The notes under the pieces were generated by a model. It searched no databases and was not told the origin of the DNA. It was given only the letters and a program-made list of their open reading frames with translations. Below are positions 2,586-58,556 of a DNA stretch of 64,000 bases, one piece after another; positions within the stretch are counted from its first letter, which is position 1; each line of letters begins with the position of its first letter. The translations under genes and the position numbers were made by a program. The stretch lies in IMG/VR virus record IMGVR_UViG_3300023202_000247, positions 1 to 64,000 of that record; one strand, 5' to 3'.

Positions 2586-2759
2586 ATGACCGCACGCAAC
2601 GCACACGCACGCAACGCACGCACGGCCCACAAGCGCGAGACGCACGACAAGCGCTCGCACTACGGGTTTTTCAATAGAATGACCAACAAGCTCGAGCGCT
2701 CGAAGCGCTTCGAGCTTGTCTGGATTGACGACATTCCGTGCATGGTCCGCGTCAGCTGA
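2586..2759 (+). CDS. Small hypothetical protein, 57 aa (MTARNAHARNARTAHK...)
   Basis: GAGGT RBS upstream and TATAAT at 2521; below the ORF-track cutoff. Confidence 0.45.
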   Translation: MTARNAHARNARTAHKRETHDKRSHYGFFNRMTNKLERSKRFELVWIDDIPCMVRVS

Positions 2760-2899
2760 GCGCTGGGAATCTGATCCGAACGTTCGAGCATCCGTCGCAT
2801 CCCGCGTCCAGGCGCAAGTGCGTCTCGACGTTGGATGCCGCGGGCATTCGAGCCCGAGCCAACAACCGGGCGGTGATCCGTCCGGTTAAGGAGAACATC

Positions 2900-3163
2900 A
2901 TGGCAAAGAAGACCACGAAGAAGACCGCAAAGAAGACCACGAAGAAGACCACGAAGATGAACGCCAAGGGACCAACCCGCGTGCCGCGCAACCGTGGCGT
3001 GAAGGCCACCCCGGTGGCAGATCGCTTCGTGTGGAAGCGGGAGTGCCCGGTAGTGGCCTTTCGTAAGGGTGATTCGGTCGAAACGGCCGAGGAGCTTCTG
3101 CTCGAGCGCCCGAATCTCGAGCGCAAGTGGGTTCCGGCGGCCGACTGCCAGCTGTCCAGCTAG
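2900..3163 (+). CDS. Hypothetical protein with a Lys/Thr-rich histone-like N-terminus (MAKKTTKKTAKK...)
   Basis: AAGGAG RBS before the ATG at 2900, inside ORF 2738-3163. Confidence 0.7.
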   Translation: MAKKTTKKTAKKTTKKTTKMNAKGPTRVPRNRGVKATPVADRFVWKRECPVVAFRKGDSVETAEELLLERPNLERKWVPAADCQLSS

Positions 3164-3168
3164 GGGGC

Positions 3169-3454
3169 GAAGGTGCGCGGCTAGTCAAACGAGCCAGTAG
3201 GCTTTTCCCGTCAAGCCAAGTCCCGCCGGGTCTCGGCTCGGGCCGTAAGGTCCGGGCCGAGATCCGTTCAGAGTCCGCGCCGAGCCAATAGGCTGGCGCG
3301 GCCGTGAGCACGCATTGATGCGTGCGAGCGAAGGTTTCAATCCATTCTGGCTAATAATGCCAGGGTTCAAAGCCCGTGTAACAATCACGGGAGGAGTGTA
3401 TCTATGACCAACCAGCAAGCAATCCGTCACATGGGCTCGCCCGATCTCGAGGTA
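3169..3454 (+). repeat. Copy 1 of a 286-bp structured leader plus first 17 codons (MTNQQAIRHMGSPDLEV)
   Basis: Identical to 4824-5109; about eight consecutive hairpins ending next to an AGGAG RBS. Confidence 0.95.
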
Positions 3455-3754
3455 ATCGAACATGCCCTCGAAGTGCACGGCTCATACGCCGAGGCCGTAG
3501 CCGCGCTGGAGTCGTGGCACCACGGGATCCTGGTGTCCGCGGGTGGCGGGTCGTACAGAGCGATCTACTGCTGCGCGCCGGAGGATATGCCGAGCGTGCT
3601 GAGCCATGCCGATTCCCGTCGGCACGCTCCGATGCTCGTGACGATCGCCCACCGAGGAGCCGCGCCACAGCACTGGGCCCAGGATCCGTCCGGCCATCGT
3701 CGCGGCGGTAGCAGGGTGATCCGGGTGCAGCGCCCGGCCGAGGTGCAGTCATGA
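3404..3754 (+). CDS. Hypothetical protein, 116 aa
   Basis: RBS GGAGGAG; shares its N-terminus with 5059-5439; stop overlaps the next ATG. Confidence 0.75.
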   Translation: MTNQQAIRHMGSPDLEVIEHALEVHGSYAEAVAALESWHHGILVSAGGGSYRAIYCCAPEDMPSVLSHADSRRHAPMLVTIAHRGAAPQHWAQDPSGHRRGGSRVIRVQRPAEVQS

Positions 3755-3927
3755 GCGCCGACACCGCGATCGTAGTCACGCGCCACCTGGCGCTGGTAGA
3801 GTACCTGCGTGAGCAGGGCCTCATCGACGAGGACACCGACGTGGTGGCCCACGTCACCGATCCGGAGCAGATTCGGGGGCTGCACGTGATAGGGCCCGTC
3901 CCACTGCACCTCGCGGCGGATCAATAG
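3751..3927 (+). pseudogene. csx16: Truncated Csx16-like (ring-nuclease-related) protein, 58 aa
   Basis: IVVTRHLALVEYL...VVAHV...IRGLHVIGPVPLHLAA matches the Csx16-type motif (TRH.A..E ... HVIG.LP.HLAA); C-terminal part missing. Confidence 0.55.
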
Positions 3928-3961
3928 GCTGATCGGAGAGTGGGCGGACGCTCACGGGCTA

Positions 3962-4168
3962 GTGAAGTTCCGGGGGTTGCTCGGGCGCACGCACGCTCTC
4001 CCGGGAGACACCGCAGCAGCGCTCGAGCTGGTGCGACTGAGCAGACTGGATCCTCCGTACGGAGGTGAGATCCAGTGGGTGGGCATGCTCGATGGGATCC
4101 CGTGCGTGCGCCTCGGGATCAAGGTTGCCGGTCACGAGCTGTACGTGTCCTTCGTGCCGGAGCGCTGA
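3962..4168 (+). CDS. Hypothetical protein, possibly 5'-truncated
   Basis: ORF track; its 3' half is duplicated at 5529-5614. Confidence 0.5.
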   Translation: MKFRGLLGRTHALPGDTAAALELVRLSRLDPPYGGEIQWVGMLDGIPCVRLGIKVAGHELYVSFVPER

Positions 4169-4275
4169 CACCCCCATCCTGCCCCGGAGCATGCTCCGGG
4201 TCGGGAGTGGCGGATTCAGCCGCTGACTGGAGGATAGAGATGAAACGGTTCCGTTTGGACCCCGATACCGGCTTT
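4083..4275 (+). repeat. Copy 1 of a 193-bp module: gene end, hairpins, RBS and MKRFRLDPDTGF start
   Basis: Near-identical to 5529-5721; includes the palindrome CCCGGAGCATGCTCCGGG. Confidence 0.93.
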
Positions 4276-4494
4276 CGGCACGTGCCGGTGGTTCCTGCCG
4301 CGGGCTGGGACGAGCAAGATGAACACGTGATGCTGCGGTGGCCGTATGTAGGCTTGCTCGAGCGCTACGAGCGCGAGCCGGTACTCATCTGCTCCGCCGC
4401 GGTCCAAACGGGCCTGTGGACTCGTGGACATGGTTGGTTCGCGGCGGGTGTGTCTGTGCGCGGGTCGAGGCGCAGTCATGAGCGCCGACCTTGA
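4240..4494 (+). CDS. Hypothetical protein starting MKRFRLDPDTGF
   Basis: GGAGGA RBS; lies in frame within ORF 4075-4494. Confidence 0.6.
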   Translation: MKRFRLDPDTGFRHVPVVPAAGWDEQDEHVMLRWPYVGLLERYEREPVLICSAAVQTGLWTRGHGWFAAGVSVRGSRRSHERRP

Positions 4495-4585
4495 GCTACT
4501 GCGCGACAACTGAGCCCGCGGGGGCGGGGCCCGAGTATCTCGGACCTCGCACCGGCTGACTCAATCGAGCCGAAAGGAGTAGACC

Positions 4586-4825
4586 ATGTACGCAGTCATC
4601 CGCAACGCCACCCGCTACACCGGGACCCAAACATTCGCCGGCCACGTCGAGAGCCGGCACGACTCGCTCGAGGATGCGCTCCGCGCGGAGGCTCGCTCAC
4701 AGCGAGCCTGCACGCGCGCGAACGGCCCCCACACCTGGCTCGATCTGAGGGTCATCGAGATCGAGTGGGACGGCGGCGAGGCCGCCCGGGGCGAATCCCG
4801 GAGTAGCGTCGACCTCCTCGACTGA
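4586..4825 (+). CDS. Hypothetical protein, 79 aa
   Basis: AAAGGAG RBS; ORF track. Confidence 0.75.
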   Translation: MYAVIRNATRYTGTQTFAGHVESRHDSLEDALRAEARSQRACTRANGPHTWLDLRVIEIEWDGGEAARGESRSSVDLLD

Positions 4826-5109
4826 AGGTGCGCGGCTAGTCAAACGAGCCAGTAGGCTTTTCCCGTCAAGCCAAGTCCCGCCGGGTCTCGGCTCGGGCCG
4901 TAAGGTCCGGGCCGAGATCCGTTCAGAGTCCGCGCCGAGCCAATAGGCTGGCGCGGCCGTGAGCACGCATTGATGCGTGCGAGCGAAGGTTTCAATCCAT
5001 TCTGGCTAATAATGCCAGGGTTCAAAGCCCGTGTAACAATCACGGGAGGAGTGTATCTATGACCAACCAGCAAGCAATCCGTCACATGGGCTCGCCCGAT
5101 CTCGAGGTA
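4824..5109 (+). repeat. Copy 2 of the 286-bp structured leader module
   Basis: Identical to 3169-3454. Confidence 0.95.
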
Positions 5110-5439
5110 CATGATCTGGCTCGTTTTTGCGAGTCAAAGGTGAAGCGCGTTCGCAAGCGTGCGCTGCACTTGGCGAGCATGCACTTGGTCGAAACCCCGA
5201 AGTGGGGTGCGGCCGAACAGCTGCTAGCCCGGCGAGTGATCCGGGGAATCCAACGGAATCAGGGTGCAAGTCTATCCGACTTGTATGCTCCGGTTCCGGC
5301 CGCGTTCGTACGGGCGTGTGCGTGGGCGCTGGCGTGCAAAGGAAGCACGCGAGGCAAGCTCGAGGGCAAGTTTAGACGAGCCCTACGTGAGAGTCAGTAC
5401 GAGCAGAGCGCGGGGAAGTCCGCGCGGAAGGCTGCGTAA
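5059..5439 (+). CDS. Hypothetical protein, 126 aa
   Basis: Same RBS and N-terminus as 3404, unrelated body. Confidence 0.7.
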   Translation: MTNQQAIRHMGSPDLEVHDLARFCESKVKRVRKRALHLASMHLVETPKWGAAEQLLARRVIRGIQRNQGASLSDLYAPVPAAFVRACAWALACKGSTRGKLEGKFRRALRESQYEQSAGKSARKAA

Positions 5440-5528
5440 GATGGGCGGATTCAAAGGAGATATGATGATAGTCACACGCCACCTGGTCGAGGTGCAGTCG
5501 TGAGCCGGCAGGAGCATCCGCACGAGGT

Positions 5529-5721
5529 GCATGGTCGACGGGGCTCCGTGTGTGCGCCTCGGGATCAAGATCGCCGGTCACGAGCTGTACGTGTCCTTCG
5601 TGCCGGAGCGCTGACACCCCCATCCTGCCCCGGAGCATGCTCCGGGTCGGGAGTGGCGGATTCAGCCGCTGACTGGAGGATAGAGATGAAACGGTTCCGT
5701 TTGGACCCCGATACCGGCTTT
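5529..5721 (+). repeat. Copy 2 of the 193-bp module
   Basis: Near-identical to 4083-4275. Confidence 0.93.
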
Positions 5722-6021
5722 GATGCAATGTTGGATTACGATGACGGCGAGCGTTGTTGGCGCGTGTCGGCGGACCTGCTCGATGATATCGAGGCCGAAG
5801 TCGCCGAGCGCATCGCCGAGGCTGTGCGCACTCTGGCCGAGCCGCTGCAAGCAACCGAGTCCAGCGATGGGGAGTGGTACGACGTTGCCACCGTGAATGC
5901 GTGCGCCGCGTGCGGTGCCCCCACGCGCTACATGGGCTGGCTCCACGGCTACGTGCAGCCGCTCTGCCTGCGGGGCTGCCCCGTGCAGGGCTGTCGCCCG
6001 CCCACCATCGAGGAATCATGA
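5686..6021 (+). CDS. Hypothetical protein starting MKRFRLDPDTGF with a C-terminal CxxC...CxxxC
   Basis: RBS; stop overlaps the ATG at 6018. Confidence 0.65.
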   Translation: MKRFRLDPDTGFDAMLDYDDGERCWRVSADLLDDIEAEVAERIAEAVRTLAEPLQATESSDGEWYDVATVNACAACGAPTRYMGWLHGYVQPLCLRGCPVQGCRPPTIEES

Positions 6022-6155
6022 AAACAATAGTAGTAACGCGCCACCCGGCGCTAGTGGAGTACATTCACGAGATCGGCCTAGCCGGTCCGGACACTAAGGT
6101 TATTCCGCATGCACAGGCTGCGGAGCGCGGCGCAACCACCATCTATTGGGCATAA
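6018..6155 (+). pseudogene. csx16: Second truncated Csx16-like protein, 45 aa (MKTIVVTRHPALVEYIHEIGL...VIPHA)
   Basis: TRHPALVEY motif; similarity is lost after PHA. Confidence 0.55.
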
Positions 6156-32451: not shown

Positions 32452-32487
32452 GTAACAAAGAATGCTGTGCTCCTAAAAGTCACAGAC
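32452..32487 (+). CRISPR. Solitary CRISPR repeat, type B (GTAACAAAGAATGCTGTGCTCCTAAAAGTCACAGAC)
   Basis: 36 bp; aligns without gaps to the array repeat at 44040; stem CTGTG/CACAG. Confidence 0.85.
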
Positions 32488-33550
32488 CTGCCATGGATTC
32501 AATTGGCATGCCTCCCGTAAACGTGTACATGCTTCGTCGTCGTAAGAATTACGAGCTACCGAACTGAAGATAAAATAAGAGATTACATTTGCATATGTGG
32601 CAATTGTGACCACGAGTGGAAACAATCTGGAAATATTGACACTTTAAAGGTTTCATGCTCCGAGTGTTTTGATGACGATGATATCGCTTGGCACGAACTG
32701 GAAGATGAAGAGTTTGACAAGACAGTAAACCATTTAGCAGAAGAAATCGAAGGGATTTATGCGCCAGGCGAGCTTTATAACTACGTACAAGACGCTCTAA
32801 TGGAGGAAGCTGCTAAAAAAGCAAAAAGCATTAGATACCAGCAGGATAAACAGCTCGAAGCTCTTGTAAGAGTAAAAGGAAGTGAGTGGGTTAGAAAAAA
32901 TCTAATTCATCCATGGCGCTAACGTTATCGGGCCATATGGCCCGATAAATGGCCCGATACAATTTTGGAATGAGGAAATGGACGATGGCGGGCACAACTT
33001 GGAAAGCAGCATGAGCAGTCACATCTGTTGTCCAGCACAAACCGTAGAGAAAGCTTGTCTCAAAGCTCGCGATGTTTTGGAGCAAAAGCATGAGCAAATT
33101 CTAAAAGAAGGTAAAAACAGGGTAACCAAAGCGGAGGCATCATTGCTACGCTTTTTACGGTAAAGTTCTCGAAAGCGTTCAAAGCCGAAGTGGTGGCGTC
33201 CTTGGATTCCCGCACGATTCAAGCGAGAACCTGACAAACTATCTCTTCGTGAGATGTTGAGACCCAATTGACAGTTGGATCTTTGATTCGTGTGTAAGTG
33301 ACTACATTTTGTATGAACGATATGTATTGCTTGGACGTGCAAAAGAAACCATGCTGCCCGTTTCCTACTCTTATTACGATGACGTGGAAGAGCTGGAACG
33401 CTTGATTAACTTGTGCAACGTTAGCACTGGTGAAATTTTTCTCACCGGTGAAGATTTGAAACTTATCGGCGATTTCCTAGAATCAAGTCCATATCGATGA
33501 TAACAATAGAAAGAAAGGAGGAGGTTATGTATTAACCTCAACAAAGGAGC

Positions 33551-34253: not shown

Positions 34254-34358
34254 TCTGAGTAGCTTGCAGGTTTTCATTTGATTACATTACCTGATAGTGT
34301 TTTTAACATGGGTAGTTATCATAAAAGGTAATTATGGTGGCAGCCCGCGCTCATAATT

Positions 34359-34392
34359 TTACAAGGATGCTGTGCTCCTAAAAGTCAAGAGC
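34359..34392 (+). CRISPR. Solitary type B repeat with a degenerate 3' end
   Basis: TTACAAGGATGCTGTGCTCCTAAAAGTCAAGAGC, 32 nt upstream of ORF 34425. Confidence 0.75.
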
Positions 34393-34424: not shown

Positions 34425-34799
34425 ATGCATAAATTTCTCAAGGATATGGAGCAAAGTGGCGACCTACTCCTCTTTAAGCAAAAACAGATGCATCTAAATG
34501 AAGGTCCGACATTCTTTGGCAAGTCATTAACTGAGCGATGCTGTGGTACCAATTCATTTTTGACGGTGCGCTACTCATTCTTCACGTTAGAAATTCGTCA
34601 AGCTTATGACGTAGAAAACGTAAAGAAGAGTTTTACGCCTGTTAGGTGGGAATTGCGTTTCGAAGGTGGTCATGAAATCGACTGGGGTATGGCAGAGACC
34701 GTTGTAGATGCCATCGAAGATGCAGAGTCTGCGTTGCGAAAACGAGTAAAAGAATTCGTAGATATCGTTACGCTTTCTAAGAACGTTTCTAATGATTGA
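34425..34799 (+). CDS. Hypothetical protein, 124 aa
   Basis: ORF track; preceded by a type B repeat. Confidence 0.75.
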   Translation: MHKFLKDMEQSGDLLLFKQKQMHLNEGPTFFGKSLTERCCGTNSFLTVRYSFFTLEIRQAYDVENVKKSFTPVRWELRFEGGHEIDWGMAETVVDAIEDAESALRKRVKEFVDIVTLSKNVSND

Positions 34800-36517: not shown

Positions 36518-38476
36518 TAAGCTTGCTCCATTTGGAGCTGCGCAGGTCCATACGGACCAGTATCTGCGCTGGTGTCGACGTGAATTGTCGATGAGTCATA
36601 AAGAATACGAAAGCTGTGGAGAGATCAACGCAACCGGGCTTGCAGAGGCATGTGCTCAGGAGCTTGAAGCATATGTAGATTTTGAAGAATTCAAAATCTA
36701 GCCGGAAGTGTTTGATGCTGCCGCAGAAGCTGCGCTCGAATGGGAGCGAGCTGTAATCAAAGGAGATAATTAAATGCTACATTTCAATCTACCAACTACT
36801 CGCGAGCGTGCTGACTGGGGCTGTTATGGCCGTGGAGTTAGCGAGCAATACCGTCTCGTTGCCATCGAAGATGATGATACGATTCGTGCATGGGATTATG
36901 TTGGTGAAACTTACAGCGTGCATCACGATCTGAGTGATGCAGAGTGCGAAGAGATCAGGCGTATGGCTGTGCTTGTACGTAATGGCAAGTACTATACGGC
37001 TGGCGGCTTCCTCATAAGGAAAGATGAACAAGCGGCGTAAAGCAACCATCATCAAGGTTCTCGAGTCGGCATCTGTACGTATTCAGACGGCTCCGAAAAC
37101 AGCTGCGTGGATGCTTACACATCCCGAGTCTTTGCATGATGAAGCAAAGGTTCGGGATGTGGCCATACAGTATAGTGAGCCATGGATTGGACAACCATTT
37201 ATCGTGGTAGATGTTGAGTATGAGTAAAAAATCTGAAGAAAACGATATGCTCAATGTGAGCGAGAACACTGAACTGATTGGAAGGTAATTAGGTGAGGTT
37301 CAAATGGGAAATAAATTCGCGACTTATTCTTTGGTAGCGGTTCATTCCCGTGAAGCTGGCCAAGTCAGCGGCATGTGGGTGCAGGACCATGTTGGAACTC
37401 TGGACACTGCTAAGAAAGCTGCTGCCCGAACTGAAACTGTGAACGGGAACGTAAAGATCGCAGTGGTTTTCGGAGTCAACAAGACTGGCCCGATGCCGAG
37501 TTATCACGAATGTTTGGTGGAGCTGTGATGGTCATCATATCTTTTCTCACAGGCTATTGTCTATTTTCCTATGTTGCAGCCGGCTTGATTGCAAACAAGC
37601 GTGTCGGAGGCCAAGAAGCCAAAGTTATGTTTGGAGATGTAATGGTTGGTATTCTGTGGCCGTTGTGGATTTCGTTAGCCTGCTTTAAGGCTTTGTATCT
37701 TTTCGCATGTTGGTTGCCCAATGCATTTGTAAGACTTTACAAATGGTCTGTTGTATCTGGTAGTACTGTAAAGACATCGTTGCTTGCAGCAATTTCAATG
37801 TCACTCGGACTTGAGTCTGAGAAAAAGGATGATGTACGAGAGCATGGTGCTTATCGTACATGCGCAAGGGTCGAACTTCTAGAAGTGGACAATGATTATG
37901 ACTACATCGATCGTCCGCTTCTGATTCCAACAGAGGTGAATTGGGATTGGGACTACTCATACGGTGACTGCGAAGATGATGAAGATGGATTTTACGATGA
38001 AAAGTTTCAAAACATGCTGGATGAAAGCCCCGCCATCAAGATGGCAAAGTTTCGAGACGTGATGAATGATGATGGCTAAGCCGATACGATTCGTTGTAAT
38101 CCTACCATCGTTGCTTTTTACATTGAGTGCGTTTATCCTGCTTTGGGTGGCCACTCGAGGTTCGGTGTTTGAGGCGATTGTTTTTCTCATAGCATCGCTC
38201 TTCCATTTCTTTGCAGCTTACAAGTTCTACCTTTACATGGATATGAAAGATGCTCCGTTACCAAAGCGCAAGGAGCATCCGGGTCCATTGGTTGCGTTGG
38301 TATATCCCAATGCATTTCCAAATGTTGACCGGGAAAAACTTCAAGAACATATCAAAGAGTGTTTGCCATGCAGACTCTTTGTTGAAAGCGAATGTGAGAA
38401 CAATCCTCATCGCGATGCGACTCGCGATGAATTGCGTGAAATCTGGGAACGAAGAATAAATAAAGAAACGGAGTAA
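36510..38476 (+). other. Small hypothetical genes, including two membrane proteins (37528-38079, 38066-38476)
   Basis: ORF track; hydrophobic segments. Confidence 0.6.
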
Positions 38477-38573: not shown

Positions 38574-39359
38574 ATGGAAAAGTTACGAGTAGAGATTAAT
38601 TGTCGTGGTAACAAGATGTATTACAAGTGGGATACGGATGAACTGCATAATCCGTATGGTCCAGCTGTTGAATACGCAAATGGAACTAAATATTGGTATC
38701 TAAACGGTAAACATCACAGAGATGATGGCCCAGCTGTTGAATATGCAAATGGAGCTAAAGAGTGGTGGATAAACGATAAGCGTCATCGTGAGGATGGTCC
38801 AGCTGTTGAAGGTGCAAATGGACATAAAGAGTGGTATCTAAACAATAAACTTCATCGTGAAGATGGTCCAGCTGTTGAAGGTGCAAATGGACATAAAGAT
38901 TGGTATCTAAATAGTAAACGTCACCGAGAAGATGGTCCAGCTGTTGAATATGCAAATGGATATAAATCTTGGTGGATAAATGGTAAACGTCACCGAGAAG
39001 ATGGTCCAGCTATTGAATATGCAGATGGATATAAAGATTGGTATGTAAACGGCAAGCTTCATCGTGAAAATGGTCCAGCTGTTGAATTTGCAAATGGACA
39101 TAAAGAATGGTATCTAAACGGTAAACTTCATCGTAAAGATGGTCCAGCAATTGAAAATGCAAATGGACGTAAAGAGTGGTGGGTAAACGGAAAGCTTCAT
39201 CGTGAGGATGGTCCAGCTGTTGAATATGCAAATGGAGATAAATGTTGGTATGTAAATGGTACCAAACTGACAGAAGAAGAGTTCAACAGTCGTCACTCAT
39301 CTTGTACCAGCAAGATTGTTAAGATTGACGGAAAACGCTACAAGTTAGAAGAGATTTGA
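38574..39359 (+). CDS. HREDGPA repeat protein, 9 units
   Basis: Same caps and 23-aa period as array 1. Confidence 0.92.
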   Translation: MEKLRVEINCRGNKMYYKWDTDELHNPYGPAVEYANGTKYWYLNGKHHRDDGPAVEYANGAKEWWINDKRHREDGPAVEGANGHKEWYLNNKLHREDGPAVEGANGHKDWYLNSKRHREDGPAVEYANGYKSWWINGKRHREDGPAIEYADGYKDWYVNGKLHRENGPAVEFANGHKEWYLNGKLHRKDGPAIENANGRKEWWVNGKLHREDGPAVEYANGDKCWYVNGTKLTEEEFNSRHSSCTSKIVKIDGKRYKLEEI

Positions 39360-39802
39360 AAATGGAAAAGATAAGATTAGAGATTAATTGTCGTGGTGAC
39401 AAGAAGTATTACAAGTGGGATACGGATGAGTATCATAATCCATATGGTCCAGCTGTTGAATACGAAAATGGAGATAAATATTGGTATTTAAACGATAAGT
39501 GTCACCGAGAAGATGGTCCAGCTGTTGAACATGCAGATGGGCGTAAAGCTTGGTATCTAAACGGAAATCGTCACCGAGAAGATGGTCCAGCTGTTGAATA
39601 TACAAGTGGGGATAAAGAGTGGTGGGTAAATGGGGTACTTCACCGAGAAGATGGTCCGGCAATTGAAGGTGCAGATGGACGTAAATCTTGGTATGTAAAC
39701 GGTACCAAACTGACAAAAGAAGAATTCAACAGTCGTCACTCATCTTGTACCAGCAAGATTGTGGAGATTGACGGAAAACGTTACAAGCTAGAAGAAGTTT
39801 GA
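39356..39802 (+). CDS. HREDGPA repeat protein, 4 units
   Basis: Paralog. Confidence 0.92.
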   Translation: MKMEKIRLEINCRGDKKYYKWDTDEYHNPYGPAVEYENGDKYWYLNDKCHREDGPAVEHADGRKAWYLNGNRHREDGPAVEYTSGDKEWWVNGVLHREDGPAIEGADGRKSWYVNGTKLTKEEFNSRHSSCTSKIVEIDGKRYKLEEV

Positions 39803-40314
39803 GCATGGAAAAGCTAAGATTAGAGATTGACTGTGATGGTACAAAAAAGTATTACAAGTGGGATATGGATGAACTGCATAATCCATATGGTCCAGCTGTT
39901 GAATACGAAAATGGAGATAAATATTGGTATCTAAACGATAAGCTTCACCGAGAAGATGGTCCAGCTGTTGAACATGCAGATGGAAATAAATCTTGGTATC
40001 TAAACGGTAAACTTCATCGTGAGGGTGGTCCAGCTGTTGAAAATGCAAATGGAGATAAAGAGTGGTGGGTAAACGTAAAGCTTCATCGTGAGGATGGTCC
40101 AGCAGTTGAACATGTAGATGGATCTAAATTTTGGTATGTAAACAACAAGCTTCACCGAGATGATGGTCCAGCTGTTGAATATGCAAATGGAACTAAATGT
40201 TGGTATGTAAACGGTACCAAACTGACAAAAGAAGAATTCAACAGTCGTCACTCATCTTGTACCAGCAAGATTGTGGAGATTGACGGAAAACGTTACAAGC
40301 TAGAAGAGATTTGA
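39799..40314 (+). CDS. HREDGPA repeat protein, 5 units
   Basis: Paralog. Confidence 0.92.
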   Translation: MSMEKLRLEIDCDGTKKYYKWDMDELHNPYGPAVEYENGDKYWYLNDKLHREDGPAVEHADGNKSWYLNGKLHREGGPAVENANGDKEWWVNVKLHREDGPAVEHVDGSKFWYVNNKLHRDDGPAVEYANGTKCWYVNGTKLTKEEFNSRHSSCTSKIVEIDGKRYKLEEI

Positions 40315-40685
40315 AAATGGAAAAGCTAAGATTAGAGATTAATTGTCGTGGTGACAAGAAGTATTACAAGTGGGATACGTGTGAACTGCATAATCCATAT
40401 GGTCCAGCAATTGAATTTGCTGGAGATAAATATTGGTATCTAAACGATAAGTGTCATCGAAAAGATGGTCCAGCAATTGAATTTGTAAATGGAACCAAAT
40501 CTTGGTGGATAAACAATAAACTTCATCGGGAAGATGGTCCAGCAATTGAATGGGCAAATGGATCTAAATATTGGTATGTAAACGGTGTCGAATTGACAGA
40601 GGCAGAGTTCAACAATCGTCACTCATCTTGTGCTGGTAAAGTTGTAGAAATTGACGGAAAACGTTACAAACTAGAAGAGATTTGA
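40311..40685 (+). CDS. HREDGPA repeat protein, 3 units
   Basis: Paralog. Confidence 0.92.
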   Translation: MKMEKLRLEINCRGDKKYYKWDTCELHNPYGPAIEFAGDKYWYLNDKCHRKDGPAIEFVNGTKSWWINNKLHREDGPAIEWANGSKYWYVNGVELTEAEFNNRHSSCAGKVVEIDGKRYKLEEI

Positions 40686-41254
40686 AAATGGAAAAGCTAA
40701 GATTAGAGATTAACCATCATGGTGACAAGAGGTATTACAAGTGGGATACGGATGAACTGCATAATCCGTATGGTCCATCTGTTGAATACAAAAATGGATC
40801 TAAATATTGGTATGTAAACGGCAAGCTTCATCGTGAAAATGGTCCAGCTATTGAATTTGCAAGTGGGCGTAAAGATTGGTATGTAAACGGCAAGCTTCAT
40901 CGTGAAAATAGTCCAGCTATTGAATTTGCAAATGGACATAAAGAATGGTATGTAAACGGTAAACTTCATCGTGAAGATGGTCCAGCACCGGCTGACTCAA
41001 TCACGAGCTGGAACATTCGGGAAGATGATGGTTCGAATCCATCACGGCCGGTCATGCACAAATTGCATAAATTGTTAATATCATTGTGGTTTTTGATGCT
41101 CGTACTCATATGTGTGGGTGACCATGTGTATGAGTATCACGAGTGTAAAAGTATCGAGCAGCGTAGTAAGTTCTCCGTGATAAACGGATGTGAAGTAAAT
41201 GTGGGTGGAACGTGGGTTCCACGGCAAGCGTGGGGTGGTGATAAAAATGAATGA
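40682..41254 (+). CDS. Chimeric ORF: HREDGPA N-terminal part read through into a 66-aa membrane-protein ORF (ATG 41054)
   Basis: Repeat breaks at GPA|PADS (about 40987); MHKLHKLLISLWFL... follows. Confidence 0.7.
   Translation: MKMEKLRLEINHHGDKRYYKWDTDELHNPYGPSVEYKNGSKYWYVNGKLHRENGPAIEFASGRKDWYVNGKLHRENSPAIEFANGHKEWYVNGKLHREDGPAPADSITSWNIREDDGSNPSRPVMHKLHKLLISLWFLMLVLICVGDHVYEYHECKSIEQRSKFSVINGCEVNVGGTWVPRQAWGGDKNE
40986..41054 (+). tRNA. Degenerate tRNA-like element (not a functional tRNA call)
   Basis: GATGG-TTCGAAT-CCATC T-arm, ACCGGC/GCCGGT acceptor-like stem, CTC-AATCAC-GAG D-arm-like; no credible anticodon arm or CCA. Confidence 0.35.
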
Positions 41255-41370: not shown

Positions 41371-41916
41371 ATGCATACGGACAAGATTGTTGATTATATC
41401 AACAGCCGTTTGATAAGTATTCAAAAGAAGTACAACTTTCCTCCGAACGTCAAGTTGCGTGACGTTCCAGATAATAAAGATGCAATAAAACATTATCATC
41501 AATTCAAAGAATTGGTGAGGTTAATTGAAAAAACGAATCTCGACGTTGATATTCCGTATGACGAGAGTGGTGAGTCGCCCACAGAAAAGTTTGTGAAGCT
41601 CACTCAACGTGATGTATTCGTTTACTTCTGCCAAGAAGGCTTCTCCACAACTTGGAAGATTGGATACTCAACCCAATCATTTCGAAGAATAAAAGCAGTG
41701 CAGACTGGCAATCCGAACGATTTGCACTTGCGCTATGAGGTGCCTGGTTCCTTTGACCTAGAGCAAAGCCTTCATAGGTATCTGAAGAACTTTAGAATCA
41801 AGGGTCGGTCGAAGGAGTGGTTCGACCTTGACCCTGCAATGGTTGAGAACATTGTTAAACGCCTGAAAAATGGCGAAGATTTTTATACACAAAAGGCTTT
41901 GAAAAATGAAACGTAA
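41371..41916 (+). CDS. GIY-YIG (T5orf172/MUG113-like) domain protein
   Basis: VYFCQEG...WKIGYS...IKAVQTGNP...LEQSLHRYL...EWF. Confidence 0.85.
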   Translation: MHTDKIVDYINSRLISIQKKYNFPPNVKLRDVPDNKDAIKHYHQFKELVRLIEKTNLDVDIPYDESGESPTEKFVKLTQRDVFVYFCQEGFSTTWKIGYSTQSFRRIKAVQTGNPNDLHLRYEVPGSFDLEQSLHRYLKNFRIKGRSKEWFDLDPAMVENIVKRLKNGEDFYTQKALKNET

Positions 41917-43921
41917 GACTTCATCGTTGCCTACGCGAATTTACACATATGGCATCGTAAGTATGGATACAGATAGTCATAGCATCATCATGGAGCAGTT
42001 GTTCGAAGGCAACAAAGTTCGTAATCAACTTGTTGCTCTCGAGCGTGAGCGACGCGCAAAGTTTCGCACGCTTCGCTCCGAGGTTGCTCCGCAGCTCGCT
42101 GTTCTCGAGATGGAAAAAGACGGTATCGTATCCCTATACGATGATGCACTTGTCCAGTTGAAGAAGCTCAAGCGTACTGAGCGTGATGGTTCGGCAGAGC
42201 TTGATGTTTTGAATGGTGTGAAAAAGAAACTAGCCATAGTCAAAGAACGTCTGAAGAAGATGCGGCAAGAGGTTGATGACGAGCACTTCAAGCCTGGTAA
42301 AATCGCTTTCAAGAAAGAGTACAAGAAAAGGGTTGAAGATTACAAGGCTCAAGATGAAAACGGTAACTGCGGGCCACATATCCAAGCACGTATCAAAAAA
42401 GAATTGCGTGAAGAGTTTCGTGCCGATTGCAAGTACTCTAGTTGGTTGAAGAGTGACGAGATTCAGGAGTGGTTCGAGTCAGAGTTCAAGCGCATCAAGA
42501 ATGAGAGTCCTTGTTACCCTGGTACCAAGGCTGCTGTATCTGATGCAGCTATGAAGTCATTTAGTGACTCTATGGTTGATCCAGCATTCAAACCTTTTGA
42601 TGGTGGTCGAGTCGAGCGTCAGCTGTTAGAGGCGGTAAAAGGAAAGTATATTGCTGCCATTCCAGAACGAATCATGTCTGGAGAGCTACGTAACATTTGC
42701 ATCACGCCGGTAATGCCAAAACTCAGCAATGGTGGAGAATATCAGGCAAAAATCAGATTGGCCAATGATGTTTACGTAACTGTAAACTTCATCATGCATC
42801 GACCATTGCCTCAAGACTCGTCCGCAAAGTTTGTTCGCGTTCTCGCAAAACGAGTTGGAAATCATTTCAAGTTCGAGTTACAATTTGTAATCGAGTTTGA
42901 TTTGCCCGATCGTCAAACTACTGATAGCTTGATTGCTCTCGACATTGGTTGGCGAGTGCTAGATGATGGTAGTTTCTTGGTTGCTACGTCATGGGATGGT
43001 AAAGAAACGAAACAGTTGAAGTTGCCATCCGAACTTGCAAGTATCAACGCACGATGTGTAGAGCTTCTTGGTTATGCTGATAAGCATCTTGATAATATCA
43101 AGGTGTTTGCTGGTGAACACAAGGAAGACATTGCCAAGGTAATTGGTGATCGTATGGATCTTTCACACATTCACAAGTGGCGCTCGTCAAAAAAGATGCG
43201 CAAACTAACAAACATCTTTGTGCAAGATGTACTTGATGAGCGTGTCCATGAACTATGGAGGTCTTGGAAAAAGCATCGTGGGTTCAACAAAACTAAGGGT
43301 CAAACTTGGTCTCAGTGGAGGGCTTTGCGAAAGACACCACCAAAGGATCTGTATGATAAGCCAGACATCATCTTTGCGTGGGCATCTAGCCTTGATTTGA
43401 GTAATGATGAGTGCATTGCTGTGTGTTTGGAATGGTGGCGTCGTAAGGATATTCACCTGACTGACTATGCACGGAATACTCAGCATCGTTTGTTCTTGCG
43501 TCGTCGCGAAATCTTCCGAGTTTTTGCAAGTCAGATTGCTAAAAAGTATGATACTTTGGTAATTGCAAAGCTCAATCGCTCCAAGCTAGCAGAAAAGCCC
43601 AAGGCGGATAAGGACCGACGTACCAAGCATGACGAGAACACAAATAGTGTGCGTCAGTTTGTTGGGCCTTCCATTCTAGTACAAGCATGTAAGGAAGCGT
43701 TCCGAGGCTCCGTTGTGGAGCTTTCTGGCGTGAAGAATCTTCATCACAACTGTGGAGGCAAGCCTAAGACTGAACACAAGATTCAAAATGTCTTGTGTGG
43801 TAAGTGTGAAAAAATGTTTAACCATGATTTGAATTACGCAAAGGTATTGTATCATCGCGGTAGCGAGCGGTCCGGTGGTGCCGCAGGTACCGGCAGCGCT
43901 CGTAAAAGTGCAAGTGCGTGA
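41906..43921 (+). CDS. cas12m: Type V CRISPR effector, Cas12m (V-M, formerly V-U1)-like, probably DNase-inactive
   Basis: RIYTYG N-terminus, MHRPLP, RuvC-I LDIGWR, RuvC-II position LVIAKLN without an acidic residue, CGKC zinc ribbon, RuvC-III HDLNYA; immediately followed by leader and repeats. Confidence 0.8.
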   Translation: MKRKTSSLPTRIYTYGIVSMDTDSHSIIMEQLFEGNKVRNQLVALERERRAKFRTLRSEVAPQLAVLEMEKDGIVSLYDDALVQLKKLKRTERDGSAELDVLNGVKKKLAIVKERLKKMRQEVDDEHFKPGKIAFKKEYKKRVEDYKAQDENGNCGPHIQARIKKELREEFRADCKYSSWLKSDEIQEWFESEFKRIKNESPCYPGTKAAVSDAAMKSFSDSMVDPAFKPFDGGRVERQLLEAVKGKYIAAIPERIMSGELRNICITPVMPKLSNGGEYQAKIRLANDVYVTVNFIMHRPLPQDSSAKFVRVLAKRVGNHFKFELQFVIEFDLPDRQTTDSLIALDIGWRVLDDGSFLVATSWDGKETKQLKLPSELASINARCVELLGYADKHLDNIKVFAGEHKEDIAKVIGDRMDLSHIHKWRSSKKMRKLTNIFVQDVLDERVHELWRSWKKHRGFNKTKGQTWSQWRALRKTPPKDLYDKPDIIFAWASSLDLSNDECIAVCLEWWRRKDIHLTDYARNTQHRLFLRRREIFRVFASQIAKKYDTLVIAKLNRSKLAEKPKADKDRRTKHDENTNSVRQFVGPSILVQACKEAFRGSVVELSGVKNLHHNCGGKPKTEHKIQNVLCGKCEKMFNHDLNYAKVLYHRGSERSGGAAGTGSARKSASA

Positions 43922-44039
43922 TTTCATTGCTAAAGATGTAGAATGAGAAAATAATTTTGCAAGTTGTTATAATAATAATTTGCAACCTCTTGCAAAACAA
44001 CCCGTAACCATTTGAAATCATTGATGATTTCAAATGGGG
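43899..44039 (+). promoter_or_regulatory. CRISPR leader copy 1 with an extended -10 promoter (TGTTATAAT, 43965-43973) and a 14-bp palindrome
   Basis: CCATTTGAAATCAT-TG-ATGATTTCAAATGG directly before repeat 1; duplicated at 44526-44686. Confidence 0.8.
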
Positions 44040-44183
44040 GTAACAAAGGATGCTACGCTCCTTAAAGTTGTAGACGATTGGTTGGGAGTGGAGTCGCTAC
44101 GTCGAGCCAGGTAACAAAGGATGCTACGCTCCTTAAAGTCACAGACAAACTCAAAGAATGCTGTGCTCCTAAAAGTCACAGAC
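44040..44183 (+). CRISPR. Mini-array 1: type A repeat, 35-nt spacer, A/B hybrid repeat (44111-44146), type B repeat (44148-44183)
   Basis: Direct inspection. Confidence 0.9.
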
Positions 44184-44213: not shown

Positions 44214-44519
44214 ATGAAGAAGAGTAACGAAACGAATTTTTCATCAGCATATTTCCACATTTACAATGGTGGAATGTCAATTTCTATCGTCAAAATATCT
44301 GAAGGTGATACCTTAGAATTTAGATTGAGAATTGCAAACTCAATTTTCGGAGCAGCGTTTAGTCATGAATTTCCGTTGCCTCCACCAAAGGGGTTGCGTT
44401 GGATTGCAAAATCCTTTGAAAGTTTGGCTGATTATATAGAGAAAGAATCAGCCAATGGTCATAACAGTATTTCTCCATTTGAGACCATCCAGATAAATGG
44501 TAGCGAATCTAAGCTTTAA
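44214..44519 (+). CDS. Hypothetical protein, 101 aa, embedded in the CRISPR locus
   Basis: ATG 30 nt after a type B repeat; stop just before leader copy 2. Confidence 0.7.
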   Translation: MKKSNETNFSSAYFHIYNGGMSISIVKISEGDTLEFRLRIANSIFGAAFSHEFPLPPPKGLRWIAKSFESLADYIEKESANGHNSISPFETIQINGSESKL

Positions 44520-44525
44520 AGGACT

Positions 44526-44686
44526 CTCGCAAAAGTGCAAGTGCGTGATTTCATTGCAATCGGAGACAGCATGCCCCTAAAGATGTAGACTGAAAAAATA
44601 ATTTTGCAAGTTGTTATAATAATAATCTGCAACCACTCGCAAAACAACCCGTAACCATTTGAAATCATTGATGATTTCAAATGGGG
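44526..44686 (+). promoter_or_regulatory. CRISPR leader copy 2
   Basis: Near-identical to leader 1 with a 20-nt insertion; TGTTATAAT at 44612-44620. Confidence 0.8.
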
Positions 44687-45377
44687 GTAACAAAGGATGC
44701 TACGCTCCTTAAAGTTGTAGACGACGATAGCCGCTGCAGTGTGCACTGAATACGCAAGTAACAAAGGATGCTACGCTCCTTAAAGTTGTAGACAAATCGC
44801 CCGGCCAGACAGGGAGCTGGCGAAGTTGGTCGAGCCGGTGTAACAAAGGATGCTACCCTCCTTAAAGTTGTAGACTATTCTTACAATGTGCATCTGAGCA
44901 TTATTTACAAGTAACAAAGGATGCTACGCTCCTTAAAGTTGTAGATTAGGACTGATTGTGGTGAAGCAGAAAGAAGGTAACAAAGGATGCTACGCTCCTT
45001 AAAGTTGTAGACTAGACAGCTCGCCGAGCGATCCGAAGTTGGTCGAGCCGGTGTAACAAAGGATGCTACCCTCCTTAAAGTTGTAGACTATTCTTACAAT
45101 GTGCATCTGAGCATTATTTACAAGTAACAAAGGATGCTACGCTCCTTAAAGTTGTAGATTAGGACTGATTGTGGTGAAGCAGAAAGAAGGTAACAAAGGA
45201 TGCTACGCTCCTTAAAGTTGTAGACTAGACCGCGGCACCGCGTGTGACGCTCCTCATGTAATAAAGGATGCTACGCTCCTTAAAGTTGTAGACAGGGGAC
45301 GAGCCGTGAGCGGCTCGTAATAAAGGATGTAGACAGCCACAGCCATAGCCAATGGATGCCACGCTCCTTAAAGTTGT
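44687..45377 (+). CRISPR. Main array, repeat GTAACAAAGGATGCTACGCTCCTTAAAGTTGTAGAC
   Basis: Full repeats at 44687, 44758, 44840, 44911, 44977, 45053, 45124, 45190, 45258; degenerate repeats at 45317 and about 45354; spacers 23-46 nt. Confidence 0.97.
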
Positions 45378-45566
45378 TGTAAAAATGTACCTGGGGTGCG
45401 CCTATATAAAGTAACAGTAATAAAATGTCACCAAAACCATGGACCATTGAAGGTATAATAATTTCTGCAAGGAATGATTTGGCTTTAGGTAAGACACCAA
45501 GTGGTGGGCCACTTACAATCATAGCCGCAAGCATACTTGCCAAACAATATAGTCCACGAAAGCAAG

Positions 45567-57792: not shown

Positions 57793-57882
57793 GTCACAGA
57801 CAAGTATCGTAGTTAGATGGAGCCTCAGTGGTAACGCAGAACGTGAGACGAGGCTGTCACTGCATTTGATCTACGAAGAATT

Positions 57883-57992
57883 TTTACAAAGGATGCTGTG
57901 CTCCTAAAAGTCACAGACGGCTTGACGCCGCCAGAATTCGTGATTAGCATGATGTTTCATCACAAAGGATGCTGTGCTCCTAAGTCACAGAC
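57883..57992 (+). CRISPR. Mini-array of two type B repeats (57883-57918, about 57958-57992) around a spacer of about 40 nt
   Basis: Direct inspection; the second repeat has a 2-nt deletion in the loop; a further 3'-end remnant GTCACAGAC lies at 57793-57801. Confidence 0.85.
57922..57950 (+). promoter_or_regulatory. sigma70-type promoter occupying the mini-array spacer
   Basis: TTGACG, exactly 17 bp, TAGCAT; predicted start site about 57957, at the 5' end of the second repeat. Confidence 0.65.
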
Positions 57993-58049: not shown

Positions 58050-58556
58050 ATGAGTAACCAAACCAAGCAAGCCTACACTTCGCATGACGCCGCCAAGATC
58101 CTGGGTGTGAGCAATAGCTCCGTGCTCAAGTGGATTGACGACGAAAAGCTCGCAGCCTACCGTACCCCTGGTGGTCACCGGCGCATCAAGCCCGAGGATC
58201 TTCGTGCGTTCGCTGCCGAGTATGAGATGCCGTTTGCTGCCGGCGACGCTGGCGAGGGCAAGGTATTCTTCCTGGGCAAGCGTCTGCCCAAGAGCCTGAA
58301 GGATTACGACACCCAGAAGTTCTCGCCGAGTGACATGGTCAAAACGATCGTGGCCATCGCTTCCGAGAAGCCTGCGGTTGTCGTGCAGGCCGAGGGTGAC
58401 AATGCCGAGAGCGTACTCGAGGCAATTCAGGAGAGCAGTGCGGGTTCCCGCTACGTTCTCGTGGCCGAGGAGAACGAGGAGAACGCGGCCCTGCTCAAGA
58501 GCGTGAAGAAGCTCGGCGGCGAGGTTGTGGCCTCTCTGAAGGATCTCGAGCTGTAA
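58050..58556 (+). CDS. Excisionase-type HTH (HTH_17/MerR-like) regulator with a degenerate receiver-like C-terminus
   Basis: YTSHDAAKILGVSNSSVLKWID...AYRTPGGHRRI. Confidence 0.85.
   Translation: MSNQTKQAYTSHDAAKILGVSNSSVLKWIDDEKLAAYRTPGGHRRIKPEDLRAFAAEYEMPFAAGDAGEGKVFFLGKRLPKSLKDYDTQKFSPSDMVKTIVAIASEKPAVVVQAEGDNAESVLEAIQESSAGSRYVLVAEENEENAALLKSVKKLGGEVVASLKDLEL

Follow-up and report, generated by a model that had tools for sequence, protein, structure and literature searches.

The CRISPR locus of a large phage

We analyzed the first 64 kb (the window) of the IMG/VR virus record IMGVR_UViG_3300023202_000247, a single linear contig of 321,461 bp, for a CRISPR-type locus. As seen in Table 1, the gene of its effector, a member of the Cas12m family, is found directly behind a gene with a T5orf172 domain and before short CRISPR arrays, and this arrangement characterizes a subclade of viral effectors. 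One array spacer matches a gene of the same genome perfectly, and further copies of the CRISPR repeat are scattered through the genome.

Table 1. Features of the CRISPR locus and the scattered repeat copies (window positions unless marked as genome; ORF, open reading frame; AF2, AlphaFold2)
Feature	Position	Strand	Remarks
T5orf172/MUG113-domain gene, 181 aa	41371-41916	+	Pfam MUG113 E 1.5e-12, T5orf172 E 1e-11
Cas12m-family (type V-M) effector, 671 aa	41906-43921	+	Triad D346/A554/D641; phmmer, PADLOC, AF2/Foldseek, alignments
Leader 1, 118 nt	43922-44039	+	Begins directly after effector stop
Array 1	44040-44183	+	A-type repeat, 35-nt spacer, A/B hybrid repeat, B-type repeat
101-aa ORF	44214-44519	+	Between the two leader copies; starts 30 nt past B-type repeat
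Duplicated effector 3' end and leader 2	44526-44686	+	Second hairpin copy 44655-44684
Array 2	44687-45381	+	Ten 36-nt A-type repeats, truncated repeat, degenerate terminal repeat
Self-matching spacer, copy 1	44876-44910	+	35/35 match to genome 260195-260161
Self-matching spacer, copy 2	45089-45123	+	Arose by 213-bp tandem duplication
Solitary B-type repeat	32452-32487	+	106 nt into short ORF, apparently interrupted
Degenerate B-type repeat	34357-34392	+	32 nt before ATG of ORF 34425-34799
Mini-array: B-type repeat, 40-nt spacer, B-type repeat with 2-nt deletion	57883-57992	+	Copies at 57883/57959
Single repeats	Genome 72131, 72284, 72649, 171961	+	Repeat scan
Back-to-back doublets, 37-nt period	44111/44148; genome 108136/108173, 108716/108753	+	Repeat scan
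C-type/B-type pair	Genome 116986/117033	+	Repeat scan

A Cas12m-family effector without the RuvC-II glutamate

The original prediction, made from the letters of the window, had placed a Cas12m-like protein of 671 aa at 41906 to 43921 on the plus strand; both the ORF and the three motifs quoted for it, LDIGWR (D346), VIAKLN (A554) and HDLNYA (D641), were recovered exactly. The family assignment was likewise upheld by profile and structure comparison. The best PADLOC profile was Cas12u1 (V-U1, the older name of Cas12m; E = 1.8e-47), and all significant phmmer matches among the PDB sequences were Cas12m chains, the best being 23vw_A (E = 1.2e-24). Pfam returned nothing for the effector, and NCBIfam only TnpB, weakly (E = 0.0036). 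An AF2 model built with 12 homologues (predicted local distance difference test [pLDDT], 82) is predicted to carry long helices across residues 22 to 149, and its top Foldseek matches were the Cas12m structures 8pm4 and 8hhl, with template modeling (TM) scores of 0.70 and 0.67. Cas12f chains reached at most 0.49, and TnpB 8h1j scored 0.61 by target (TMt) but 0.35 by query (TMq). In this comparison, the modeled fold appears to contain the parts expected of Cas12m, namely the wedge (WED) domain, the recognition (REC) domain with its coiled-coil insertion, RuvC and the zinc-ribbon target nucleic acid-binding (TNB) domain. Overall, by sequence, profile and predicted fold, the effector belongs to the Cas12m (type V-M, formerly V-U1) family. 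Grouping with TnpB of insertion sequences, which had been named as a possible refutation, came out negative, and an IS200-IS605 element was rejected, as the gene is single copy in the genome (tblastn), CRISPR arrays are found where an omega-RNA would be expected, and the context of the locus is conserved in phages. Among 1.8 billion cluster representatives, phmmer retrieved 2,424 relatives of the effector at E ≤ 1e-3, including 105 at E ≤ 1e-30.

In the phmmer alignment to 23vw_A, D346 and D641 occupy the columns of the RuvC-I and RuvC-III Asp, and the RuvC-II Glu of 23vw_A (VLEEF) is aligned with the Ala of VIAKL. MAFFT alignments of 12 and of ~150 homologues gave the same triad columns, with A554 in that of the Glu. 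The broken triad of the original prediction is thus genuine, yet typical of Cas12m and less special than was implied. Among the ~150 nearest cluster representatives, DED (47), NED (35), NDD (8), NAD (6), DAD (5) and NGD (5) triads coexist with many singletons, and the RuvC-II column in many relatives holds Ala, Asn, Gly, Arg, Ser, Thr, Gln, Pro or Val, a variety which argues for relaxed selection on catalysis. Variable RuvC triads define Cas12m clades (PMC10442227), the subtype has been described as showing "gradual inactivation" (PMC10691335), and in the literature DNA is bound but left uncut by members of the DED, HDD and NDD types alike (PMC11013384). Cas12m processes its precursor CRISPR RNA (pre-crRNA) independently of RuvC (PMC11013384, PMC10442227).

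The effector evolves under purifying selection. An orthologue with 86% identity (P0002) retains the D-A-D triad, and the ratio of nonsynonymous to synonymous substitution rates (dN/dS) between the two is 0.11 at a dS of 0.74, indicating a working protein and not a decaying gene. Judged from its sequence, the properties of the family, the replacement of Glu by Ala and the perfect self-target described below argue that the effector would bind its target DNA without cleavage.

A T5orf172 gene is the conserved partner of the effector

The contexts of relatives were obtained by exact-protein look-ups and one IMG/VR scan. At least 15 viral loci in IMG/VR, with contigs reaching 406 kb, were found to carry effector relatives; neither the INPHARED phages nor a single-protein IMG/VR scan yielded close relatives of the locus. 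In the window, the 3' end of the T5orf172/MUG113 gene overlaps the effector start by 11 nt. The gene was also found directly upstream of the effector at the loci L014, L020 and L024, where the two overlap, at L022/L023, where they abut, and at L015 and L025, where a short gap separates them. Effectors of these loci are 30 to 35% identical to that of the window, except for L014 (86%), and the T5orf172 gene is not present beside more distant members. Compared with its L014 orthologue, the T5orf172 gene has a dN/dS of 0.11, and residues Y85, W95, K96, G98, S100, R106, N114 and E149 of its product are invariant. The T5orf172 gene is, in summary, a conserved partner of this effector subclade. Its PHROG relatives carry a homing endonuclease annotation, and Pfam groups the T5orf172 domain with the GIY-YIG nucleases. 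An AF2 model of the protein gave no nuclease fold or significant match in the PDB (best Foldseek E, 0.12).

Directly upstream of the T5orf172-effector pair, positions 38574 to 41254 hold five tandem paralogues of MORN-type repeats (YANGxKxWYLNGKLHREDGPA). In L025, the closest IMG/VR relative, repeated units of ~104 to 300 nt on both sides of the pair may correspond to similar genes.

Two arrays with covarying repeat handles

A leader and an array had been predicted to follow the effector at once. A leader does begin right after the stop codon, but it precedes the first of two arrays, with the 101-aa ORF (no Pfam, PHROG or PADLOC match) between them. A duplication covers the final 23 nt of the effector gene together with the leader, 43899 to 44077 matching 44526 to 44724. 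Leader 1 contains a 13-bp hairpin at 44008 to 44037 that abuts the first repeat (-20.4 kcal/mol; z, -5.3) and, by consensus match only, a promoter-like site at 43927 to 43955. In array 1, the A-type repeat (44040 to 44075) and the hybrid repeat (44111 to 44146) are followed, one base later, by the B-type repeat (44148 to 44183). The spacers of array 2 measure 30 to 46 nt, and the array contains an internal tandem duplication of 213 bp, of which 200 nt are identical (44821 to 45020 and 45034 to 45233). Four DNA metagenome runs, all from one study, contain pieces of both arrays. Samples differ at the distal end of array 2 (45288 to 45345), which includes the truncated repeat, by a 5-nt insertion and a 3-nt deletion. 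A search of both strands genome-wide, tolerating up to 12 mismatches in 36, found no anti-repeat of a trans-activating crRNA (tracrRNA); an adjacent array and no tracrRNA are what is expected of a Cas12m system.

Of the 36 repeat positions, 7 distinguish the A type from the B type, and five of these 7 fall in two short segments that remain complementary; a third (C) type occurs at genome position 116986. To evaluate covariation in the handle, the repeat types of this genome were aligned with the array repeats of four relatives, giving 7 repeat types. The helix 14-18:30-34 was paired in 100% of the sequences, with four of its five pairs changed on both sides, and the covariation score was 0.75, versus 0.22 in shuffled alignments and at most 0.20 with the partner columns slid. 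A second helix, 7-11:20-24, was weaker (69% paired). These predicted helices would provide the pseudoknot or stem expected in a Cas12m 5' handle; the crRNA handle of Cas12m2 is a pseudoknot (PMC10442227). A repeat pattern in which the helix positions were left free had no match in the viral, species-genome and metagenome collections.

A duplicated spacer matches the phage's own genome

When all spacers were compared with the genome by blastn-short, one match was obtained, 35/35, where ~5e-16 would be expected by chance. The target comprises codons 619 to 630 of a 682-aa ORF (258306 to 260354, plus strand), 159 nt before its stop codon and 174 nt before an HNH/EndoVII-like ORF, within a run of six large co-oriented ORFs. 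The 682-aa protein had no Pfam or PHROG match; its language-model and weak structural neighbors are gp5 OB-domain and gpV baseplate-spike proteins, a lead only, by which the target would be a gp5/gpV-like spike gene. The HNH/endonuclease VII-like ORF, free-standing at 260369 to 261283 (L010 16369-17283), comes immediately after the targeted gene. A promoter scan around the self-target gave no more sites than in shuffled sequence.

Spacer and self-target are on one contig. L018, another IMG/VR assembly of this phage (99.99% identity), also holds the self-target, and in run X1 the array flanks have a depth of ~235x and the summed spacer depth is roughly as would be expected if the target contig had a similar depth. 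Among the relatives, where the search spanned ~10 kb on each side of the effector, an L027 spacer matches (36/36) a small repetitive ORF 11 kb away on its own contig; the L027 effector has a DED triad. Two apparent further self-matches in a contig of run X4 were reinterpreted as a rearranged solitary repeat and not array spacers.

Since the match is perfect and on the same genome, a cutting enzyme could not tolerate it. Self-regulation, one of the uses proposed in the original prediction, gains direct support from the self-matching spacer. Host or competitor targets, proposed alongside it, were found for no other spacer: six seeds from five non-self spacers had no match in phage, viral, metagenome and species-genome collections (five seed searches in IMG/VR, one in metagenomes and one in species genomes), and only the self-matching spacer matched, in L018, which is this phage again, in a different sample. 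GC content is 54 to 66% in five of the seven distinct spacers and 40.6% in the genome.

Repeat copies are scattered before other genes

A mismatch-tolerant scan of the genome identified 15 repeat copies beyond the main arrays, at 10 loci and all on the plus strand, counting the copy at 44148 that abuts array 1. None overlaps an ORF of at least 100 aa, and such ORFs make up 86% of the genome (P, ~2e-9 for 10 loci). For eight copies, the distance to the ATG of the next ORF is 11, 13, 28, 30, 32, 34, 57 or 78 nt; the copy 57 nt upstream is the end of the mini-array, which precedes an HTH_17/MerR-like regulator gene (58050 to 58556). Products of the downstream genes also include an RtcB ligase that contains a LAGLIDADG insert, a transglycosylase and several small unknown proteins. 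A core of 27 nt, the structured handle, is identical in 10 copies, and the 5' 9 nt vary; in Cas12m2 the corresponding 9-nt stretch is cut off or disordered (PMC10442227). The 40 nt after each scattered repeat gave only chance-level matches of 13 to 18 nt to the genome (blastn-short). No second effector that might serve the B-type repeats was found in the genome or in a 113-kb sister contig.

Similar copies occur in the relatives. At L015, a two-repeat mini-array ends 22 nt before a PP-loop ATPase gene. At L022, the handle copies are on the minus strand, as is the gene block around them, and an HSP20 ATG follows one copy after 5 nt. A 5-nt gap to an ATG is also seen at L025, whose copy has compensatory changes in the other helix, and a gap of 56 nt at L027; the L030 array ends in the same kind of back-to-back doublet, again with compensatory changes. 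Finally, in L029 (8486-8706) and L033 (11783-13110), runs of 5 to >18 diverged handles occur at intervals of 46 to 50 nt, with spacers of ~10 nt, and the copies differ by compensatory changes; such arrays seem to specify scaffolds and not guides.

Several further observations concern the surroundings of the scattered copies. A 153-aa ORF at genome 108243-108704 is bracketed by identical 81-nt direct repeats (108128-108788; L003 4128-4788), each consisting of GATGAAGA and two back-to-back B-type repeats, and owing to these brackets it looks like an excisable cassette. Before the RtcB RNA ligase gene with its LAGLIDADG intein-like insert (genome 116986-119549; L003 12986-15546) come the C-type/B-type pair and a hairpin rich in GC. 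Seven copies of an 11-nt motif, AAGTATCGTAG, are present, on the plus strand only and mostly just after degenerate repeat 3' ends (window 46231 and 57803; genome 72058, 72170, 72251, 72569 and 79767); the complement of the motif at genome 71944 could pair with the copy at 72058, and Rfam gave no match there. A 34-nt segment between this motif and the next B repeat is inverted at 57846-57879 relative to genome 72612-72645. The low-depth X4 contig (placed at 44757-44789) carries an A-like repeat between the reverse complement of 32536-32561 and 36714-36733; it is apparently a rearranged strain variant, with the repeat ~60 nt upstream of ORF 36774-37040.

The virus record lacks cas1 and cas2

The record is classed as viral in IMG/VR, with a CheckV completeness estimate of 75%. 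Of its ORFs of at least 100 aa, ~91% are on the plus strand. The hallmark Pfam profiles Terminase_6N and Phage_sheath_1 gave no match, so the viral status is based on IMG/VR, CheckV, PHROG matches and the gp5-like features. As predicted, the window contains no cas1, cas2 or cas4, and cas1 and cas2 had no match across the entire 321,461 bp; at 75% completeness, the missing part could hold adaptation genes. The sole match to the Cas4 Pfam profile, at genome 161454-161915 (L019 1501-1962; 28.5 bits, just above the cut-off), lies beyond the window, 117 kb from the arrays. A Cas4 identity was rejected for this ORF because a generic PD-(D/E)XK nuclease profile scores far better (PDDEXK_1, E = 2.5e-18). 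The further proposal that the phage borrows the adaptation machinery of its host found no support, the repeat pattern being present in none of the genomes of 185,579 species. Rfam, run on the window and on 40 kb spanning the complex repeat regions, reported no family. Elsewhere in the window, positions 2700 to 6100 have a GC content of 59 to 64% (genome-wide, 40.6%) and duplicated segments; ORFs there overlap on both strands, those at 3404 and 5059 begin with an identical N-terminal peptide, and there are few clean genes.

A proposed binding-only effector acting on the phage itself

Taken together, these results lead us to propose, with a probability of about 60%, a binding-only effector that the phage employs, in part at least, on its own genome and transcripts. 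By extension from the family, the effector would load crRNAs whose 5' handle is the repeat pseudoknot, would excise them from longer transcripts by its RuvC-independent activity, and would bind double-stranded DNA flanked by a protospacer-adjacent motif (PAM) tightly and without cutting, so that transcription or replication would be blocked. The self-matching crRNA would obstruct the spike gene near its 3' end; the HNH endonuclease gene, to which this roadblock is possibly linked, starts 174 nt farther on. The phage would tolerate, and probably uses, binding at its own spike gene. At the scaffolds 11 to 78 nt before about 10 other genes, the effector would bind or cut the mRNA leaders and in this way set stability or translation. 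The other, GC-rich spacers would probably be aimed at hosts or rival phages.

Several points weigh against this proposal. We infer transcription, processing and binding throughout. The self-matching crRNA would pair with the plus (coding, non-template) strand, the self-target is inside a coding region and not at a promoter, and the self-targets of the window and of L027 are in opposite strand orientations relative to their genes. A T- or C-rich 5' PAM is expected of Cas12m, and the one known protospacer has the 5' flank TTTTATC (protospacer strand), which does not fit the published 5'-TTN at -3 to -1; a missing PAM could therefore prevent self-binding. Moreover, the genes behind the scattered repeats share no evident theme, the scattered copies are of the B type and the main array is of the A type, so that recognition of both by one protein is an assumption, and the repeats also mark junctions of duplication and rearrangement, such that some copies may be scars.

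A bolder version of the proposal, which we put forward tentatively, is that this phage family uses the Cas12m-type effector and its T5orf172 partner as its own gene-expression controller, CRISPR being regulatory here and not immune. If true, scaffolds in leaders would let the effector cut or clamp selected mRNAs, and self-spacers would be programmable roadblocks on structural genes.

Alternatively, the system might be purely a weapon against rival phages or the host, acting by superinfection exclusion or by silencing through DNA binding. The self-match would then be incidental, the spacer deriving from the spike gene of a close relative, and the phage's own copy would be spared by its non-PAM flank or by the harmlessness of binding. 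CRISPR systems of huge phages that lack adaptation genes have been reported to be directed against structural genes of other phages and host genes (PMC7162821). The high GC content of five of the seven spacers indicates an origin elsewhere, and the misfit of the self-target flank to TTN points in the same direction. Nevertheless, no spacer matched any searched phage, plasmid-free genome or metagenome record; the self-matching spacer alone has a known target, and it is the one that is duplicated. The independent relative L027 also has a perfect self-match, and the scaffolds before genes are left unexplained. We therefore consider a pure weapon unlikely.

For the scattered repeats alone, recombination scars or hot spots without any RNA function could be envisaged, with exchange between repeats shuffling gene cassettes among related phages. 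In T4-type phages, cassettes of promoters and stem-loops are shuffled by homologous exchange. The cassette-like ORF at 108243-108704 between two B-type doublets, the 101-aa ORF between duplicated leaders, the tandem duplication in array 2, the rearranged flanks of the repeat in the X4 contig and the short ORF interrupted by the repeat at 32452 would all fit. However, scars would be expected to decay and to lie on either strand without preference, whereas the core is unchanged across 10 copies, the orientation of the repeats follows that of the genes, even at the strand switch of L022, and the changes in the core are compensatory. That all copies are scars thus seems rather improbable, and the two readings are not exclusive, since scar and function can both be true.

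Another possibility is that the scattered B-type repeats are RNA anti-CRISPRs (Racr-type), decoys that would capture a Cas12m-type effector encoded by the host or by a rival phage and would be unrelated to the phage's own effector. Solitary repeat units of viruses inhibit type I-F, I-E, I-C and V-A systems (PMC10651486), the handle helix distinguishes the B-type copies from the repeat in the phage's own array, and their number would ensure a high dose. Racr units, however, typically occur without cas genes, and the genome described here, like L022, L025 and L027, itself encodes the cognate effector. The repeat pattern is in no prokaryotic genome, metagenome or other viral record searched, array 1 of the phage itself has a B-type repeat physically attached to it, and L030 has a terminal doublet with a compensatory change in its own array, which makes decoys a poor candidate. 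Least probable of all, the system might still cut DNA, through a substitute acidic residue or through the co-translated T5orf172 protein acting as a nuclease in trans, as its conservation at the effector in seven loci, its invariant Tyr, Arg and Glu and the annotation of its PHROG relatives could suggest, but a perfect self-target on the same genome would be lethal, the Glu column is highly varied, and the model of the partner has no nuclease fold from the PDB.

Significance and comparison with known systems

Cas12m is a natural "dead" Cas12 that is under development for base editing, epigenome editing and genetic circuits, and its biology is known from few bacterial examples. The locus and the 15 IMG/VR viral loci indicate that large phages maintain a broad and varied stock of compact Cas12m-type binders, which differ in their handles and triads. 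Genomic evidence against in vivo cutting by such an effector is seldom as direct as the perfect self-match, which suggests that a virus uses CRISPR to regulate itself. The conserved T5orf172 partner may represent a new accessory protein of type V-M systems. Should the handle copies in leaders prove to be bound or processed, they would represent a new coupling of a Cas protein to post-transcriptional control and a natural counterpart of synthetic Cas RNA processing for gene insulation, and the repeats would supply ready-made orthogonal scaffold variants (A, B and C types). A limited literature search found no report of a pairing of T5orf172 with Cas12m (with no mention in PMC10691335), of phage Cas12m systems that have self-matching spacers or of handle copies before phage genes with the effector on the same genome.

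Among repeat-derived RNAs, crlRNA, the CreA of CreTA and the long-form Cas9 tracrRNA carry a degenerate repeat and a pseudo-spacer that direct a Cas effector to repress and not to cut. Those guides have a partial match to a promoter elsewhere, whereas the 40 nt after each repeat of our genome have chance-level genome matches only and do not resemble such guides. Racr units are CRISPR repeats that occur singly in viral genomes and give rise to small RNAs which bind Cas proteins (PMC10651486), and solitary copies are likewise found here. Unlike Racr units, which mimic host repeats and are unlinked to cas genes, the copies described here have their matching effector on the same genome, stand in predicted mRNA leaders and have a repeat pattern that occurs in none of the genomes of the 185,579 species. 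TldR (nuclease-dead TnpB) and Cas12k are, as the present effector would be, RuvC-inactivated RNA-guided DNA binders derived from TnpB; TldR has no CRISPR array and Cas12k is linked to Tn7, neither of which applies to this locus.

The closest known systems are those of Cas12m itself (MmCas12m2, GoCas12m and PmCas12m; 8hhl, 8pm4 and 23vw), which have in common with the present one the fold, the domain order, a single effector by an array, the lack of a tracrRNA, the pseudoknotted 5' handle and a degraded RuvC triad; by analogy, the binding-not-cutting mode would be expected as well. The effector described here is 13 to 17% identical to solved Cas12m proteins (8pm4, Cas12m2 chains) over the Foldseek alignments and is 60 to 90 aa longer, and its D-A-D triad differs from the published HEK/HQK, HDD, DED/NED, DND and NDD types. 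Moreover, unlike the solved systems, it is encoded by a jumbo phage, is paired with T5orf172, has a self-matching spacer and is accompanied by handle copies throughout the genome. MvCas12m, from the myxophage lineage MV-1 (bioRxiv 10.64898/2026.09.14.751636), is another phage Cas12m by an array without cas1, cas2, cas4 or tracrRNA. It differs in its length (610 aa), its intact DED triad and the failure to find a protospacer for it, and no partner gene, self-target or scattered repeats were reported for it. The claim in that work to the first phage Cas12m is not borne out, given the at least 15 viral loci with relatives in IMG/VR. Already in 2020, type V-U systems without adaptation genes were described in huge phages, including a "dCas14" read as a repressor (PMC7162821), and these have in common with our locus the compact arrays, the lack of adaptation genes, a missing catalytic residue and the reading as a repressor. 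The proposed target of "dCas14" was a host gene, whereas the sole identifiable target in the present system is the phage itself.

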